From: Piromyces finnis finn
Lineage: Eukaryota; Fungi; Neocallimastigomycota
Direction of reading: 5' to 3'
Assembly (NCBI GenBank): GCA_002104945.1
Contig: MCFH01000019.1
Location: 744,001-808,000, forward strand
DNA length: 64,000 nucleotides
The notes under the pieces are model-generated. The model did not search any database and was not told the origin of the DNA. It saw nothing but the letters and a program-made list of their open reading frames with translations. Positions 33,207 through 42,685 of this stretch are shown here, piece after piece (position 1 is the first letter of the stretch; every line of letters starts with the position of its first letter). The translations under genes were made by a program, and so were the position numbers.

Positions 33207-36200
33207 ATGAATGAGACAGGTAGTGTGAATATTTATACAAAAAATAAAATAAACCCATTTAATTATGTAATTGGAAATTTTAAGAATAATAATTTAAAAA
33301 AAAATGTTAATTTTTAAATATATTTTACAATTCTTTTAATATCATCATTTTAGTTAATGATAAAAATAATGCAAGGTAATTCATATTTACCAATATTATT
33401 TCTATATATATATAAAAAATGACCTTTTTTTTTTTAATAAAAATTATTAATTATTTTTTTTATAAATATCAAACATTTTATTTTTCATATTTCTGTTAGT
33501 TCTGAAAATATAAAAGTTTTTGTAAGAGTAAAAGGTCCTTCAAACGATGTCGATTCTTGTTTAAAAATTAACGGAAATACTATTACAGCAGGGGATAGTC
33601 AATTTTTATTCGATTATGTAATAAGACGATGAAATAAACTTATTATTATCATTTCCTTTAAAATATAAAAAATATATATATAATTTTAAATATAAATATA
33701 ATTTAGTTATTATATATATGTATATTTACAATTGTATTCATAATGCTAAATTTTTATTGTTGTTCTATATACTTATTAATTTCAAATAATAATAATAAAA
33801 AAATTCTTTTATTCTTTAAATAGATTGGAGATGGAAATACAACACAGGTAAAAGAAAAATAATTTATAAAAGAGATTAATGCAATAAATTTATCATACTA
33901 ATAGAAATACATTCAAATATATTTTTATAAAATGTATTTCTTTAACTACTTTTATATTAAATAATGATATAAATATAAATATAACAAAACAATAAATTGT
34001 TTAATTTTATTATAATATATATATCTTTATATTTTTAAATTAACATATATACTTTTAAAATTCAAATTAAATTTTGTTTAGGATATGGTATTTCAAATAG
34101 TAGGAATACCTATTGCAACTTCTGTATTAAAAGGTTATAATGGTACAATTTTTGCTTATGGACAAACTGGTACTGGAAAAACATATACTATGCAAGGTCC
34201 TTTTTATTCTCATGAAGATCCTAATTTTGATAATGGTGATGTTTATTCAGAAAAACAATACCTTGGTCTTATACCTAGAATTATATCATATATTTTTGCT
34301 CAGTTATCAAGGGAAGCTGAACGTAATACTAAGGATGATAAAAAATCTTCACCTGTTAAATATCTTTGTCAAGCTTCATACTATGAAATTTATAATGAAC
34401 AAATATTTGATTTATTAACGGAAGGTTCGGATGAACCATTAAATATTCATGGTAAGAATTAAATATTTATTTTACTGTTAATAATAAATTTAGATGAATA
34501 TTCATTTTTTTTAATATATATTTTTTTTTCATTATCGAAATTATATATATATATATATTTAAAAAAAAAGAGGATATTAAACGTGGTGTATTTATTGATC
34601 GATTAACTACAAGAAGTATTAGTACTGCTGAAGAAGCATATAAAATTCTAGAAATTGGTGCTTGGAAAAGAAGTACAGCATCAACTAGGATGAATACACA
34701 AAGTTCTCGTTCCCATTCTGTATTTACTCTTACGCTTCAAAGTAAAATAGAAAAAGATGGTATTACACAAATTCAAGAGTCAAAATTAAATTTAGTTGAT
34801 TTAGCAGGTAAATAAAAATTAAATGACTATATATTATATATAATATATTTAAAATAATAAAACTACAATATTATTTATGTATTATAGGAAGTGAAAGACA
34901 AAAGTTAACAGGAACAACAGGTCAACGTTTATTAGAAGCAAGAAATATTAATAAAAGTTTATCAGCACTTGGTCAAGTTATTCAATCTCTTGTAGATATG
35001 AATAATAATAAGAAGAAAGTTCATGTAGGTTATAGAAACAGTAAATTAACTTTTCTTTTAAAAGATTCATTAGGGTATGTTATAAAAAAGATTTATAAAA
35101 AAAAATAGTTATACAAATTAATAAAATGATTGTCACTTTAAAATTTCTAATTATTTTTAAAATTAAAAAAAAAAATGGCATAATAGTGGTAATTCAAAAA
35201 CATTTTTAATTGCTAATATCAGTCCATCAACATTTTCTTTAGCAGAGACTCTATCAACATTAAGATTTGCTCAATGTACTAAACAAGTAACTAACAAAGC
35301 TGTAGTGAATCAGGTATGAATATATATTAAGATGAAAAACTGGAATATTTAAATAAAATTTTATATATTTATATTAATATAACTCCATATGTAATATGAT
35401 TTAATATTTAAAGAACATCGAAGAAAATATTTGTAATTTAAAAGATCAAATATTTAAATTACAACAAGAAATTAATAAATTTAAAGAAAAGGAAACTAAA
35501 AATATGAATTTTCAAAAATCATCGGAAGAGATTAATATATATGATTTTTTTGAGGAGTGGACAAAAATTCATAGTGATATGGAAAGAAATCAAAAAGAAG
35601 TGGTTAAAAAGTTGGAAACATTAGAAGAAATAAAACAGAACCAAGATAAAATGATTAAATCTTATACAATGATAATTAAAATTCGTGATTCAATGATAGA
35701 ACAATTAAGAAAAAAAGTTGAATCAGGAAAATCTTTACTTATTGAAAAAAAGTTAAATAAAGATGAATCTATGGATCTTCCAGAATATCTCTTTCAATGG
35801 GATAATGAAAATAAATTACTTTTAGATGAAATTCAGGAATTAAAGTTTCTACATAATCAAGATCCTGAGAGGAAAAAGTTAGAAAAAGAAAATTTTATAC
35901 TTCAGAATCAAATTGATCAATTAAAAAAGTGTAAGCTTGAATATGAAAATTATCTTCAACTGAAAACATATTATCAACGTTATATTGGTTTATTAACTAA
36001 TCAGTGGTTTGATTCTCAAAAAGAAAATCAATATTTAAAACAACAATTACAACAATTATCTTATACCCCTAATAATACATTAAAATCAATGAAGCCACCA
36101 TTATATCCTATTGATAAAGAAAATAACTATCCTTTTCAACATTCTAATCAACAACATACTTTTAAATCACTATCGCTATCAAGTTCAAAGGTAAAAATCA

Positions 36201-39120
36201 TTATAATAATAATAAACATAATAATAATAATAATGATAATAATAATATAAATCTAATTTTAATTTTTAACTATAAATATATTTTTTTTACTCTTGTTATG
36301 ATTATATACTTTTTATATTATGAAAAAAAAAAAAGACGTCATATACAAATGAAATTAATATCAATCATAACACCAACTTTTTAATTAATATTAATCCAAC
36401 TTTTAATACTCAAGAACAAAATATTAAGAATTTTGAAGAAAAATTATTAGAATCAGAACAATTTGTGAAAGAATTTAATCAAAATTTAAAGAGTAAAGCA
36501 ATAAATTATCTTTCTAATAGTGCAACACTAATTAAAAATAATAAAAAAATAGAAAAAGATAATAATGATAAAATATCATTGACTAATAGTCCATTTTCTA
36601 TTAATCAAAAACAAAGAAGAGAAACTTTAGCTATTAATGATTTATTTTCAGAAAATGAAAATGTAGAAGATTTAATAAATATGGATGATATTTATGGCAT
36701 CAAAGAAGGTAGTCTAAGTCAAAAGCATGATCTTGATTTTGATAGTTTCGATGGAATTTCATTTAAAAAGCAACGATTTTCCATTGAAACAGAGTTATCT
36801 GATAGTATTTCACCACCTAATAATACATCATTATTAGTAAAACATTCTTCAATTTTGCATCCATCATCTACAAACAATATGAATTTAGATAATACCCAGG
36901 AAACAAAATTAAATTCATTTCTAGACCAAAATGAAAAAGTAATTTCATTAATAGAAGAAGAACAGAAAAAAATATTAAATTCAGATATTGATAATTTACA
37001 TAATGATGATATAAATAATGGAAATTTAATTAAAAATGAAAATAGAGTAGAAAAAGAAGTGTTATCAGATAATGATAATAAAACTAAAAATAAAATTAAA
37101 CAAGAAGAAATGAACATTAAAAATGATGTAATTATATACACAGAACCTTTAAATGATAATAGTGTTGTAGATAAAGAAGAAATTGAAAAAGTATTAACGG
37201 AGCAATTTGTAAAAATCGAAGAAGAACTAAAACGTAAAAATTCAACATTACAAAGTAAAGTTGAGCAATTAGAAAATGATCTTTCTAAAGTAAATGAAAA
37301 GCACAAAGCAATACTAAAAGAAAAAGAATTAGAATCATTAAAGCTTCTTGATCAATATGATAACAAGAGTAAAGAGTTATTAAGTATCATAGAAGAAAAT
37401 AAAACATTGAAGCAAGATTTACAATTTGCTGAGGATAATAAAAAGCAAGTTGAAGAACAACAGGTAAACATTATAATATTGTATTATAATATTGATTAAC
37501 CATGTTTCATCATGATATTAATTGGGGTATTATTTTATTATTATTGTTATTATCCATTATCATTATAAACCATTGTAGTTAATCATTTCTAATTTAAATA
37601 GCAAAATATTAATCCTTGAAAAAGCTTATGAAATAGAAAAGTCTGAAAAAAAGGGGCTAAGTGATAAACTTCAGAAACAACAAGACGAACAAACGAAAAA
37701 TGTAAATAGAAAAATAATTTATAATAGAAATATATGTATATATATGTATATATTTCATTCTATGTAGTTACCAAATAAATAATAATGTTAATATAATATT
37801 ACTTTATATTTTAGAATAATCTCCAACTTGAGCTTCAAGATAAATATAATTTAACTAAAAATGAAAATGTAAGTATATATAGGATATATAATTTTTAATA
37901 TATAATTTGGATGAATATTAATTATCTAAATAATATATAATAAAATAAAATAAAATATTATTATATTAATAAATAAAAAGATTGGACTTCAATTAAAGAT
38001 TGATCAAACGGAGAGTTTAAATGAAGATATGAAAAACGAAATTGACCATATGAAATTATATTTAAAGTCATATAAAGATAAATGTGAAAAATTTGAAGAA
38101 TATGAAATAAAAATGAAAAAAGAAATTGAAAATGTTTTAAATAAAAATATAACTGGTATGGGATTTGATGAACAGTTGAAAGAACTTTTTAATATGTATT
38201 ATCAATATAAAAATGATATTCATTCCAAGGAAGAAGTTAGTAAAAAGGATAAGGAACAAATTAAGGAATTATATGAACAAATTGATAAACTTAAACAAGA
38301 CCATAATCAATTTAAACAAAAAGTAGAAAAAGAAAAATCAAAGTATAAATCAGAGATTTCTAGTCAAATAGAAAATATAGATAAATTAAAACAAGAAATT
38401 AAAGGTAAAAATATTAAATTATTTGAAATGAATAAAGAAAAAGAAAAGCAAGTCCTTCTTTGTCAAGCTTTAGAAAAAAAGATTAAAGATTATGAATTCA
38501 AATTAGAAATTTCAAATTTACGTTATGAAGAAGTTTATAAAAAGATGATTTTAGAAAAATCCGAAAAAATACAACTTATGGAAAAACATAATACCTACAC
38601 TATGGATGAAAAGAAAAAGGATATTATTATTAATAATTTAACATTAGATGTTGAAAAATTAAATAATAAATTAAAAGGTAAACTAAAAAATGAGGATCAA
38701 ATTCAACAAGAAAATCAAAAACTTACTGAACAGCTTCATGAGCTTCAACAACAGATTAATAAACATAATAAAAACTATCAAGATTTGAAGATTCAATTAG
38801 AAGATAAAACCCAGGAATCTCTTCATTATGTAAGAAAAGTAAGGGAATATGAAAAAGAAAGGTTTGAAATATCAAAAAAATTAAATGCTTTAGAAGAATT
38901 AAAAGCAATTCATGAAAAAGATATCGAAGAACTCTCCCAAAAAACAAAGCAATTAAATGATACCCAAAAACTTGCTGAAGAAGCAACTTTAATTGCTTCA
39001 TATAAAGAAAATGAGAAAAATACCATTTTGGTAAGTTTTTTTTTTTTTAAAATTTATGTTCATTTATAAATAATATTGTAGTATAAAATATAAAATAAAA
39101 ATAAAAATTAATCTTTTTTT

Positions 39121-39162
<42 letters not shown>

Positions 39163-39681
39163 TCTATAAAAAAAAATTAGGAATCCTATGAAGAAAATAA
39201 AAAAGTACAAGAAGAAATAATTAAAGAGTATGAAAAAAAATTTACTCAAAAAGAAAAAGAATCATCAAGAGAAGTAAAAGCACTTCGTAATGAAATTCAT
39301 TCATTAAAAGAAGCTAATACAAATGATAAAAACAAGTTAACAAAGGATTATGAAAATAAAATTAAACGTCTTAATTATGAAATTAATTCATTGGAAAAGG
39401 AAAATGAAGCTTTGAAAAATGAAAATCTTAATTTAGTTATGCCAAAGAATCAGAATCAACGTATAAAATATCTTAGAAAAGTAAAAAATAACTATTTATT
39501 AAAAAAAATAAAATTCTCCTTTTTATTTTTAAATAATAAATTAATTTTTCTTTTTATATTATATATATATGTATATATTCATAATTATTAATAGATTAAA
39601 AATGAAAGTGATCACTGGAAGGAGATAGCTTTAAGATTTAGAAGAGAACTTGATAAACGTGGAATTTATATTAAACTATAA
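33207..39681 (+). CDS. KIF15: kinesin-12 (KIF15/Klp2-like): N-terminal motor, long coiled coil, HMMR_C-like tail; ~15 exons, ~1500 aa
   Basis: [31 protein letters not shown] (P-loop), NTQSSRSH (switch I), LVDLAGSER (switch II), [20 protein letters not shown], tail [20 protein letters not shown]. The first two exons (33207-33219, 33354-33375) are inferred from phase compatibility. Confidence 0.85.
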
Positions 39682-40319
39682 TAAACTTTATATTTATAAA
39701 ATATTCTTTTCTATCTATATTTATCATATATATTATATTACTACAAAAATAAAATTAATTATTATTAATTTTTTTATTTTATTTCACTCATTGTTATTTA
39801 AAAATTTTTAATTTATTATACCAAAAAAAGGTATTTATATATTAAATACCTTTTTGATTCCCATTTTACTTTATAAATGATAATTGTATTTATCAAAAAA
39901 AAAATATATATATATTTTAAAAATTTTTAATATCAATAATATAAAAATATATCGAAATAAAATAAATTTATATATTTTTTATTATTTGAAAACATTTTTT
40001 ACATTAGTATTATAAAATTCATAGATAAAACTAATATTATAGTATTAAAAGATAACTATTATACAATTCAGATTTAATTATATTTTATAATAAATTTCTA
40101 TTAATAAAAATACCCTTTTTAATATAATAAAATATATTAAAAATGTGATATAATACTTTAAATTTAATAAATTCATTTATTAATAAATTATTAATGAATC
40201 ATATTTGTATATTATCCAATGAATATTAAATTTTATTAAATTAAAAATCAAATCAAAACAAAATAAAAAATAATTATAAATTTTATTAAAGTTTTTTAAT
40301 AAATTAATTGTAGTGATGA

Positions 40320-42095
40320 ATGGAAGAGTCTAATATTCAATTAACAGAAGAGCAAGAGTTATTTATTAAAGAAGCTCTACTAGGTAAAAATATTTTAGTT
40401 GATGCGTGCATTGGAAGTGGAAAAACTACGGCTATTCAAAATCTTTGTAATAAGTTTGATCTTGGAAAAAAGATATTATATCTTACCTATAATAGATTAC
40501 TTAAAATTGATGCTAAAAGTAAAATAAAAAAGAGAAATGTTCTAGTTCAAAATTACCATGGTTTTTCTTATATGACATTAAAAAACATTGGTATAAAATC
40601 TAGTCAATCCCTTTTAATCCAAAAATTCCTGGAAGTAAAACCACCAATTAGTAAATACGATGTTTTAATACTTGATGAATACCAAGATATTGATGAAGAA
40701 ATATCTGAATTACTTAAATATATAAAATTATATAATAGTTCAATTCAAATTATTGCTGTAGGCGATATGGAACAAAAAATTTATGATTGTACAACGTTGG
40801 ATGTTATTTCTTTTATAAAAGAATTTTTAGATGATTATAAAAAATTGGAATTTACCAAATGTTTTAGACTTTCTAGTGATTTGGCTAATATGTTAGGCAG
40901 AGTGTGGAATAAAAATATAGTTGGTGTTAATGAGGATTTATCAGTAGAAGATATGACATTAGATGATGTTGTCGAATTCTTGTCTACACAAGAACCAAAA
41001 GATATTCTCTGTTTAGGAAAGAGTAAAGGTATGAGAGATAATTTATTAAATTCTTTAGAAATGAATTATCCAGAAAAATTTAATAAAAATACCGTATATG
41101 CTAAGATTTCAGATAATGAATCAATAGGTTTAACAAAATCAAATTATAATTCAGCAATTTTTACTACATATGACAGTAGTAAAGGGCTTGAAAAAAGTAT
41201 TTGTGTTATATGTGATTTTAATAAATATTATTGGAAAAAAAGAATAGATATACCTAATACACGTTATGAAATAATAAGAAACATATTTTGTGTTGCGGCA
41301 AGTAGAGGTAAAAAAAAAATTATATTTTTAAATAATGGTGAAGATCGTCTATCTGAAACGACGTTATCTATCAATGTAAATACTAGTCATAATTTTAGAG
41401 TATTTAATATATCAACGATGTTTGACTTTAAGTATAAAGAGGATATAAGACAATGTTACAAACAATTGGATATAAAAAAAATAGAGATGGAGGATACTTC
41501 TGAAATTCGTATTAACAATAGTGATGGGTTAATTGATTTGTCACCGTGTATTGGGAATTATCAAGAAGTTGTGTTTTTTGAAAATTATAATATTAATAAA
41601 ACCATTGAATTGAAATTAACAGAAGAAGAGGTTCAAAAATTGGTAAAAAAAATAGATGGTCCTATAAAGGAATTTAAAAATTTAGAAAAAGAGGTTAAAC
41701 ATAAAGTTGACGAAAGATTCATAAACAACGTTTTCCTCACTTCATTAGACGAAAAAATTTTATATTTAGCTATGCTTGAAACTAGGCAACGAAGATATAG
41801 ATATCAAGTGAAAGTTCCTTTTGTTTCAGAAAAACAAAAAGAATTGATTATTAATCGACTTAAAACGATTTTCCAAACGAATGAAGAGGTACAAAGAAAA
41901 TGTATGATGGAATTTAACTCTCAATTTCAAAAAATCTATATATTAGGATGTGCAGATGTTATAAAGAATGATATTGTTTATGAATTAAAATTTGTGTCTG
42001 AATTATCCTATGAACATTTTTTACAATGTGCTTGTTATATGGTAGCCCTTAATCTTGAGAAAGGCATTCTTTGGAATACTAAAAATAATACCTGA
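40320..42095 (+). CDS. intronless SF1 (UvrD/Rep-like) helicase fused to a C-terminal PD-(D/E)XK RecB-family nuclease, bacterial type; C-terminus probably frameshifted
   Basis: Walker A ACIGSGKTT, II DEYQD, III VGDMEQKIY, IV CFRLS, V DSSKGLE, VI VAASRGKK; nuclease GCADVIKNDIVYELKF...HFLQCACY. A protein-like continuation PDKREFLNNIVRTITKGVIKEIYIF* lies in the +1 frame at 42091-42168. Confidence 0.88.
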   Translation: MEESNIQLTEEQELFIKEALLGKNILVDACIGSGKTTAIQNLCNKFDLGKKILYLTYNRLLKIDAKSKIKKRNVLVQNYHGFSYMTLKNIGIKSSQSLLIQKFLEVKPPISKYDVLILDEYQDIDEEISELLKYIKLYNSSIQIIAVGDMEQKIYDCTTLDVISFIKEFLDDYKKLEFTKCFRLSSDLANMLGRVWNKNIVGVNEDLSVEDMTLDDVVEFLSTQEPKDILCLGKSKGMRDNLLNSLEMNYPEKFNKNTVYAKISDNESIGLTKSNYNSAIFTTYDSSKGLEKSICVICDFNKYYWKKRIDIPNTRYEIIRNIFCVAASRGKKKIIFLNNGEDRLSETTLSINVNTSHNFRVFNISTMFDFKYKEDIRQCYKQLDIKKIEMEDTSEIRINNSDGLIDLSPCIGNYQEVVFFENYNINKTIELKLTEEEVQKLVKKIDGPIKEFKNLEKEVKHKVDERFINNVFLTSLDEKILYLAMLETRQRRYRYQVKVPFVSEKQKELIINRLKTIFQTNEEVQRKCMMEFNSQFQKIYILGCADVIKNDIVYELKFVSELSYEHFLQCACYMVALNLEKGILWNTKNNT

Positions 42096-42685
42096 TAAAA
42101 GAGAATTTTTAAATAATATAGTTAGAACTATCACTAAAGGTGTTATAAAAGAAATATATATTTTTTAATTTAGATAAGATCATATACCATAGTATAATAG
42201 TAATAATGAATTGATAGTTGAAATATATAATTATTATCAATAAAGCATTATTGAAAAAAAAAGAAAAGAAAAGAAAAAAGATGAAATCTTATTTTTATTT
42301 ATATAATAACTAAAATAAAATAAAAATTTAAACAGTTTCTTTAATATATTTTTTCATTTTAATAAAAACTATAATTAAACATGTTTATCTATAATAAATT
42401 ATTTAAAAGGCAAAACAGGAATAAATAACTAATAAACAAAAAAAAAATTATTATTGATATTATTTTATTTTTATTTTTTCTATTTTTTTAAAAATATAAT
42501 ATTATTTAATATATTTAGTATGAGGAATTAAAAAATTTTATTAATAGCAAAATAGATATTTTATTTAAACATTTTAAAATCTTTCTATTGTAAAAATAAT
42601 AGTAGTTGTTAAATAAAAAAAAAAAGTGATTATGATTTAAATATATTATATATTAAAAATTGATGTAATTAGGGCTTTTTTTATT

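Follow-up and report, generated by a model that had tools for sequence, protein, structure and literature searches.

A 64-kb stretch of the genome of the anaerobic gut fungus Piromyces finnis, hereafter the window, was found to carry an intronless gene for a helicase–nuclease of bacterial descent. The predicted protein joins a UvrD-like superfamily 1 (SF1) motor to a C-terminal nuclease of the Cas4/RecB family, an identity that we regard as solid. One old acquisition by the ancestor of the Neocallimastigomycota, from a donor of the class Clostridia living in the gut, is well supported. On balance we think it probable that this single-polypeptide bacterial enzyme has been kept as a nuclear gene of the anaerobic gut fungi and operates by the mechanism proposed below. 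The copy in the window is a strain-specific truncated allele, and the truncation is polymorphic among public data sets.

The open reading frame (ORF) opens at position 40320, with the first ATG directly behind an in-frame TGA, and continues uninterrupted for 591 codons (Table 1). The GC content is 23–26% across the ORF versus 10–17% in both flanks. The gene is present as a single copy within the window, and the exact protein is recorded once, on the 857-kb contig MCFH01000019.1 of assembly GCA_002104945.1. An earlier, sequence-only reading had placed the gene at 40320–42168; its start and its description as an intronless ORF hold, whereas its end has to be moved, as the ORF stops at 42095 and position 42168 is reached only across a frameshifting deletion.

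Helicase and nuclease domains

The compact UvrD-like core with all main motifs that had been read from the DNA was recovered by Pfam, by fold matches, and by conserved or invariant positions in 55 homologs. Within motif III, V147, G148, D149, M150, and Q152 are invariant in the 55 homologs and E151 is nearly so (≥90%), and all six residues are invariant in an alignment of 12 sequences. Pfam matches on the window protein were AAA_19 (5.8e-12), UvrD-helicase (1e-5), Viral_helicase1, and, at the C terminus, PDDEXK_3 (3.7e-5); PHROGs matches were a DNA-helicase family (3.5e-25) and the Cas4-like phrog_1706 (1.9e-5). The AlphaFold2 model of the protein had a predicted local distance difference test score (pLDDT) of 84 and a predicted template modeling score of 0.79. 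A Foldseek search with the whole model gave UvrD (2is4), PcrA (1pjr), and Rep (1uaa) as best matches (E 1e-10 to 1e-9), and AdnAB was also matched. The protein thus belongs to SF1 both by sequence motifs and by two RecA-like domains with the SF1 fold. A sequence search of the PDB with the whole protein returned no useful match (best E 0.18).

The C-terminal D...E-x-K...Q-x-x-x-Y nuclease proposed in the same reading was borne out with respect to its motifs and its RecB/Cas4 fold, but the domain is not complete in this assembly. The fold was assessed on the C-terminal domain of an intact syntenic ortholog (model pLDDT 91), in which the nuclease fold is present. Foldseek placed Cas4 SSO0001 first (E 2.8e-4), followed by ACE1, AdnAB, AddAB, and Dna2. 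VIA-align Z values were 7.2 for Dna2, 7.0 for ACE1, 6.6 for Cas4, 6.5 for MGME1, 6.4 for AdnB, 6.3 for RecE, 6.2 for AddA, and 5.8 for RecB; these values are moderate, yet the list is dominated by one nuclease family, which is consistent with the motifs. Similarity to RecB in NCBIfam was marginal (0.0014). The alignment gave no evident four-cysteine iron–sulfur (Fe-S) cluster of the Cas4/AddB/Dna2 type, as only three cysteines are invariant (C410, C528, and C570) and these are scattered and do not form a CxxC...C arrangement. The order of a UvrD-like motor followed by a RecB-family nuclease corresponds to the layout of RecB, AddA, and AdnB at about half the size.

Table 1. Positions of the helicase–nuclease gene and its parts in the window, and of selected genes at bacterial loci (locus or protein handle before the colon). 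Asterisks mark stop codons.
Feature	Position	Strand	Evidence
Transcript-like contig of run X1	40307..42187	+	Contigs of two other runs begin/end within 15 nt
Intronless ORF, 591 aa, helicase–nuclease from Clostridia	40320..42095	+	Stop TGA 42093-42095
UvrD-like SF1 helicase core, aa 8-340, accessory domains reduced	40341..41339	+	Pfam, AlphaFold2 model, Foldseek
Walker A GSGKTT, aa 32-37	40413..40430	+	Invariant in 55 homologs
Walker B/motif II DEYQD, aa 119-123	40674..40688	+	Invariant in 55 homologs
Motif III VGDMEQ, aa 147-152	40758..40775	+	Alignments of 55 and 12 sequences
Motifs V (TTYDSSKGLE, aa 282-291) and VI (VAASRGK, aa 325-331)	41163..41312	+	Conserved
Cas4/RecB-family PD-(D/E)XK nuclease domain, aa about 395-591, C-terminally truncated	41502..42092	+	PDDEXK_3, phrog_1706, domain model
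Insertion of ~25 aa in all fungal copies, without bacterial counterpart; lengthens a helical hairpin in the nuclease domain	41622..41696	+	Alignment, model
Catalytic motifs D546, E555-L-K557, Q569-x-x-x-Y573 (Q569-C-A-C-Y573)	41955..42038	+	Invariant in 55 homologs
Junction of the frameshifting 20-nt deletion	42087..42088	+	Protein and DNA alignments, run X2
Out-of-frame (+1) remnant of the conserved C terminus, PDKREFLNNIVRTITKGVIKEIYIF*	42091..42168	+	Alignments, domain model
Decayed fungal-specific C-terminal extension with in-frame stops (FR*DHIP*YNSNNELIVEIYNYYQ*)	42169..42243	+	Comparison with tails of L013, L098, L002
Separate DEDDh ORFs, examples	L055:9846-10403; L082:9840-10388; L086:9794-10336		
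Fused DEDDh module, example	P0058:630-813		
pPIWI-RE (Argonaute-like) genes upstream of the helicase–nuclease in one Clostridia subclade, exonuclease follows	L078:2685-5186; L079:5478-7982; L082:5482-7980; L086:5463-7967; L090:5484-7988		

Relatives and transfer from Clostridia

A word-based protein search returned 1888 matches, of which the best after the protein itself were five others from Neocallimastigomycota (61–67% identity). Full-length fungal homologs came from Anaeromyces, Neocallimastix, Piromyces sp. E2, and metagenomic gut fungi. All further matches were bacterial, hundreds of them full-length with 52–58% identity, and the named ones were "AAA family ATPase" proteins of Clostridiales/Lachnospiraceae. 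Gut fungi were the only eukaryotes among the best 120 matches, the list on which absence from other eukaryotes is judged here, and this list held no homolog from any other fungus and no viral protein. A scan of one genome per GTDB species identified 175 carriers. The best 80 of these were gut Clostridia, including Lachnospiraceae, Oscillospiraceae, Ruminococcus, Eubacterium, and Christensenella, except for a few unclassified metagenome-assembled genomes (MAGs) and one MAG labeled as Methanobacteriota.

Phylogenetic trees were built by quick IQ-TREE searches with support by the Shimodaira–Hasegawa-like approximate likelihood ratio test (SH-aLRT) only. In a midpoint-rooted tree of 89 sequences under the LG+C20 posterior mean site frequency model, the six fungal rows formed one clade (SH-aLRT 100) on the Lachnospiraceae side, with a stem length of 0.69. 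When two actinobacterial plasmid homologs of about 38% identity served as outgroup, the fungal clade was again monophyletic (100) and inside Clostridia, and long-branched rows were now its sister. The sister group differs between the two trees, and the donor is therefore assigned to a class and not to a family. We read one old transfer from the fungal copies forming one clade inside the Clostridia radiation, with further support from the ~25-aa insertion, C-terminal extension, and low third-position GC content (GC3) that all fungal copies share (GC3 10–18% versus a bacterial median of 34%). The fungal copies are hence monophyletic, nested among bacteria, and physically integrated in a host chromosome, the features of a horizontal gene transfer (HGT). 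The likeness to gut Firmicutes noted from the sequence, and the bacterial origin it implied, are upheld by these results. The earlier suggestion that related fusions occur in other fungi found no counterpart among the best 120 matches.

Two groups of sequences fell outside the main pattern. The copy of the Methanobacteriota-labeled MAG (L059) is 55% identical to the window protein and groups with Oscillospiraceae (SH-aLRT 96–97), and represents either a binning error or an inter-domain transfer. The only two plasmid relatives are actinobacterial; these 38% homologs, on large plasmids of Rhodococcus and Gordonia (L102 and L103), belong to a conserved gene block that includes a DNA topoisomerase and a helix-turn-helix (HTH) protein, unlike the defense islands of Clostridia.

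Genomic locus and transcript-like contigs

As had been described, the gene stands between two eukaryotic genes with introns, a kinesin upstream and IFT20 on the minus strand downstream; a SWEET-type transporter, a peptidase S9, and MCM9 lie further downstream. For the kinesin region (window 33766-39362), the annotation gives two gene models, one for a 307-aa motor and the other for a 1142-aa coiled coil without Pfam match; they are colinear and conserved together in L013 and therefore probably form one gene. The order kinesin, helicase–nuclease, IFT20, peptidase S9 recurs in Piromyces sp. E2. Assemblies of JGI, ENA, and Logan yielded a 675-aa ortholog (67% identity) on 24 contigs, with the same gene order in the five places inspected. 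Bacterial contamination, which the sequence-only reading had discounted on account of the host-like AT-rich flanks, was excluded on the basis of the 857-kb eukaryotic contig, the host-like GC3, and synteny conserved in three independent sources, among them Piromyces sp. E2 and metagenome contigs. That reading had also called for a comparison of the syntenic site across the phylum. The gene occupies it in Piromyces sp. E2 and in a metagenomic fungus, but the Anaeromyces and Neocallimastix copies lie elsewhere.

These different loci would fit a gene that came from, or still belongs to, a large DNA virus or a resident mobile element, and was not acquired directly from bacteria. In addition, clusters of look-alikes of similar length and predicted structure occur in an atlas among Nucleocytoviricota and phages, the only counterpart here of the earlier mention of fusions in large DNA viruses. 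However, these matches by language model and structure are far more distant than the Clostridia proteins, whose 52–58% identity is full-length. A phage origin was rejected, as no GenBank phage matched and relatives were present on only 3 of 2.9 million IMG/VR viral contigs, two of them on long branches. A search for terminal repeats around the gene found only AT-rich chance inverted repeats, and a surrounding mobile element was rejected on this result. With one copy in the window and a locus stable across the Piromyces lineage, a viral or mobile-element origin is highly improbable.

Four public runs, labeled with one organism, contain the stretch. In three of them, contigs over the gene start at 40307–40321 or end at 42178–42187, and the AT-rich flanks are covered only by low-complexity matches of 20–30 nt; contig depths within a run vary from 3 to 170. 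These gene-limited, transcript-like contigs come from runs of three studies whose type is not on record, and they suggest a weakly expressed, unspliced transcript of ~1.9 kb.

Exonuclease partner and defense islands of the bacterial relatives

The bacterial proteins occur in two forms, of about 605 aa and about 800–930 aa, in which the extra part is C-terminal. This part aligns with an ORF of ~182 aa located directly behind the short forms (spacing −18 to +28 nt). Its D-x-E, N-x-x-F-D, and H-x-x-x-x-D motifs are invariant; Pfam assigns a Rv2179c-like 3'-5' exonuclease to 9 of 19 members and RNase_T to 2 of 19, and exonuclease X ranks first among the PDB sequences matched. On the basis of these motifs and matches, the module is identified as a DEDDh exonuclease. 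It was present in every bacterial homolog inspected, either fused or immediately downstream (examples in Table 1), and some long forms carry an added HTH_17 domain. A profile of the module gave nothing at the five fungal loci (best 2.3 bits). A relic of the exonuclease in the fungal tails or downstream DNA had been considered, as the tails were by eye faintly similar to its N terminus, and was dropped on this profile result.

The immediate upstream neighbors of 52 bacterial homologs were scanned. They included type I restriction R subunits (5–7 of 52), PbeA (6 of 52), type IV methyl-directed restriction enzymes, and pPIWI-RE proteins (5 of 52 each, the latter with a gap of 0–19 nt), as well as MADS components, DndH, JetD, RhuM/PDC-S05, phospholipase D (PLD) nucleases, and serine recombinases. 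At single loci the gene lies directly after hsdMSR, and at others beside three serine recombinases, HD-CE, RhuM, AbiEii, and transposases. PADLOC produced only one family match, a partial one to GajB (best 2.1e-13). The bacterial family is a resident of defense islands that is not modeled as a system in PADLOC 2.0, and the expectation that the bacterial relatives would sit among anti-phage genes proved correct. One Clostridiales copy (L008:6814-9377) lies beside a serine recombinase and a rolling-circle Rep protein (REP_ORF2-G2P), and its locus looks like a small integrated mobile element.

A truncated allele in P. finnis

All homologs have six extra residues (consensus MYSITI or SYEIEI) between ...WNTKxNT and PDR/PNK. 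In a DNA alignment with four other fungal copies, the window shows a clean 20-nt gap at this place, and the deletion removed the codons for MYSITI and changed the frame. The remnant PDKREFLNNIVRTITKGVIKEIYIF* beyond the junction corresponds to part of the loop behind the lost strand and then to the helix that closes the nuclease fold. The domain model assigns the residues missing from the reference allele to the last β-strand (MYSIT) and the last helix, while the GILWNT strand, which follows the QxxxY helix, and all catalytic residues stay. The nuclease of the 591-aa product is therefore, judging from this model, probably destabilized and so impaired.

Two of the public runs bear on the age of the deletion. 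Run X1 contains a contig of 1881 nt that is identical to window positions 40307–42187, deletion included, and colinear without joints. In run X2, which belongs to a different study (2022), a contig spanning 41620–42178 has ATACAATGTATTCTATTACT after position 42087, which restores ...NNTMYSITIPDKREF... at the junction. With the inserted 20 nt the frame continues to ...NNTMYSITIPDKREFLNNIVRTITKGVIKEIYIF*, giving a product of 622 aa whose end lies close to that of the short bacterial forms; the stop at 42166–42168 is the same in the X2 contig as in the window. Four substitutions separate the X2 contigs from the window, three of them nonsynonymous (V218I, K538N, and an I-to-L change in the tail) and one synonymous. 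As run X2 retains the 20 nt, the truncation is a recent strain-level change. The deleted segment begins with ATAC and is also followed by ATAC, and slippage at this microhomology is the likely cause suggested by the sequence.

An assembly artifact, with the sequenced strain truly carrying the intact 622-aa form, would be in keeping with a long-read assembly of an extremely AT-rich genome and with the intact form in run X2. Against it, the separate X1 contig matches the window across the junction, and a 20-nt loss bounded by ATAC microhomology is atypical of homopolymer error. X1 may be from the same strain, so its contig confirms the sequence and not the frequency of the allele. We consider such an artifact very unlikely.

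The other fungal copies (L013, L002, L098, and L003) extend further, by a C-terminal tail of 50–80 aa that ends in basic clusters (KKRN...KKQK, KKRRK) and is without bacterial counterpart. From their sequence, these clusters could act as a nuclear import signal.

Constraint and erosion of the fungal gene

The fungal gene has evolved under purifying selection. Nei–Gojobori dN/dS was 0.17–0.32 in all ten fungal pairs, and full-length fungal copies keep at least 92% of the 239 columns that are at least 95% conserved in bacteria. The P. finnis protein retains all family-invariant residues, and A. robustus has an intact intronless ORF of 686 aa.

Several observations weigh against a helicase–nuclease maintained and working as proposed. 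The family, both bacterial and fungal, is known here from sequence, models, and genome context, and in the Foldseek results the SF1B structures (RecD2, Dna2, and Upf1) lie only one to two orders of E-value behind those of SF1A, so that the fold gives no more than a slight preference for SF1A and its 3'-5' translocation polarity. Anaeromyces robustus and Neocallimastix californiae have their copies away from the kinesin–IFT20 locus. The frame is disrupted in three of five fungal genome copies, by the 20-nt deletion in P. finnis and by 1-nt shifts in Piromyces sp. E2 and N. californiae; the shifts lie in A-rich runs near the N terminus (L098:10001-10250 and L003:10001-10260, respectively), and a spurious intron bridges each of them in the gene models. 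In the N. lanati ortholog (P0121) the frame is intact at the site of the N. californiae shift, and the disruptions are compatible with erosion and with homopolymer sequencing errors alike. The terminal branch of P. finnis is the longest of the fungal copies (0.43–0.49), and its protein is 67% identical to the syntenic orthologs, whereas exons of IFT20 and peptidase S9 are 84–100% identical. The enzyme may also have altered or forfeited its original activity when the exonuclease partner was lost. Finally, contigs similar to the transcript-like ones could arise in a DNA run if assembly broke off at the low-complexity flanks.

Many of these points would fit a decaying relic, that is, a transferred gene of passing use or of none, now being lost in several lineages. 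P. finnis would then retain an expressed pseudogene or only a helicase remnant devoid of nuclease activity. The deletion strips the nuclease fold of its last strand and helix, the extension behind it is already broken by in-frame stops, and the differences between the X2 and window versions mostly alter the protein (three of four substitutions); the 1-nt shifts, the long P. finnis branch, and the lost partner point the same way. However, at ~25% GC an ORF of 591 codons can stay open only under selection or if it was inactivated very recently, and the family-invariant residues are all intact. The low dN/dS extends to every fungal pair, those with P. finnis included. Intact copies exist in A. 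robustus, N. lanati, and a Piromyces-like fungus (more than 20 metagenome contigs), another P. finnis run has the 20 nt, and the 1-nt shifts, in A-runs of long-read or older assemblies, may be errors. We therefore judge a relic to be rather unlikely and favor a retained helicase–nuclease gene.

Proposed mechanism and implications

By analogy with RecB, AddA, and AdnB, the UvrD-like SF1 motor would load at a DNA end or gap, translocate along one strand with ATP, and hand this strand to the C-terminal Cas4/RecB-type metal-dependent nuclease, so that linear DNA would be degraded or resected processively. The DEDDh partner of the bacterial enzyme would trim 3' ends. Enzyme and 3'-5' exonuclease most likely serve to destroy foreign DNA side by side with restriction systems or pPIWI-RE, and would degrade what these had marked or cut. 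In the fungus, the protein, having acquired host composition, the ~25-aa insertion, and the basic tail and having lost the DEDDh module, may have foreign or viral DNA, or else broken ends, as its substrate. A role in defense or repair is at most a reasonable guess.

A bolder proposal is that gut fungi domesticated the motor–nuclease core of an uncharacterized bacterial immune module to destroy incoming viral, transposon, or bacterial DNA in the nucleus. This is a speculative reading to which we give little credence; if true, the protein would be a eukaryotic innate-immunity nuclease of prokaryotic defense-island origin, and the strain-level truncation in P. finnis would represent the presence/absence turnover typical of immune genes.

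Transfers from Clostridia to gut fungi are well documented, but the cases discussed are nearly all metabolic enzymes, whereas the present gene encodes a DNA-processing enzyme with relatives in defense islands and bears on how often eukaryotes have borrowed prokaryotic immune hardware. It also exposes an uncharacterized and very abundant module of gut Clostridia, composed of a helicase, a Cas4-like nuclease, and a DEDDh exonuclease and sometimes operonic with pPIWI-RE. For annotation, the P. finnis gene model should be read as that of a truncated allele.

Comparison with known systems

For the Neocallimastigomycota, 283 HGT events have been reported, 106 of them from Clostridiales, with information-processing genes making up about 5% (Murphy et al., 10.1101/487215). 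These transfers resemble the present one in donor class, recipient phylum, intronless structure, and ameliorated composition. A helicase/nuclease is not mentioned in the main text and supplement; the full event table lies outside them and may list the gene. Nor is one mentioned in the main text of a further gut-fungal HGT study.

The closest architectural parallel is with RecB, AddA, and AdnB, which likewise place a UvrD-like SF1 motor before a C-terminal RecB-family PD-(D/E)XK nuclease (D...ExK...QxxxY) in one polypeptide. However, the fungal protein has ~600 aa compared to 1000–1200 aa, with much reduced accessory domains. The bacterial and fungal loci have neither a neighboring partner helicase/nuclease subunit, as in RecBCD, AddAB, and AdnAB, nor a Chi-recognition subunit; the bacterial partner is instead a small DEDDh exonuclease, and the context is that of defense islands and not of recombination operons. 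Hna, the helicase–nuclease abortive-infection protein of 845 aa, has an SF2 DinG-like motor (PMC13381803). It shares an N-terminal helicase and C-terminal PD-(D/E)XK nuclease in one protein and a place among bacterial defense genes, but the present motor is SF1 and UvrD-like, so the two are analogous and not homologous. Gabija GajB is also a UvrD-like helicase, hence the PADLOC match, but the best-scoring stretches span only ~45–80 residues around motifs II–III, GajB is without a PD-(D/E)XK domain, and no GajA (OLD/TOPRIM) neighbor was found at the inspected loci.

Cas4 and ACE1 (Argonaute-associated Cas4-like) are top structural matches of the nuclease domain, and one bacterial subclade adjoins pPIWI-RE. 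Compared with Cas4, the present nuclease is fused to a helicase, the four-cysteine Fe-S arrangement is not evident, and there is no CRISPR context. The three-gene pPIWI-RE system comprises a restriction endonuclease, a DinG helicase, and pPIWI-RE (PMC3702460). No PIWI-RE neighbor stands at the fungal gene, but the five Clostridia loci again join PIWI-RE, a restriction-fold nuclease, and a helicase. There the helicase is SF1 in place of DinG and fused to the nuclease, the gene order is different, and a DEDDh exonuclease follows; we regard this arrangement as a variant of the canonical triad.

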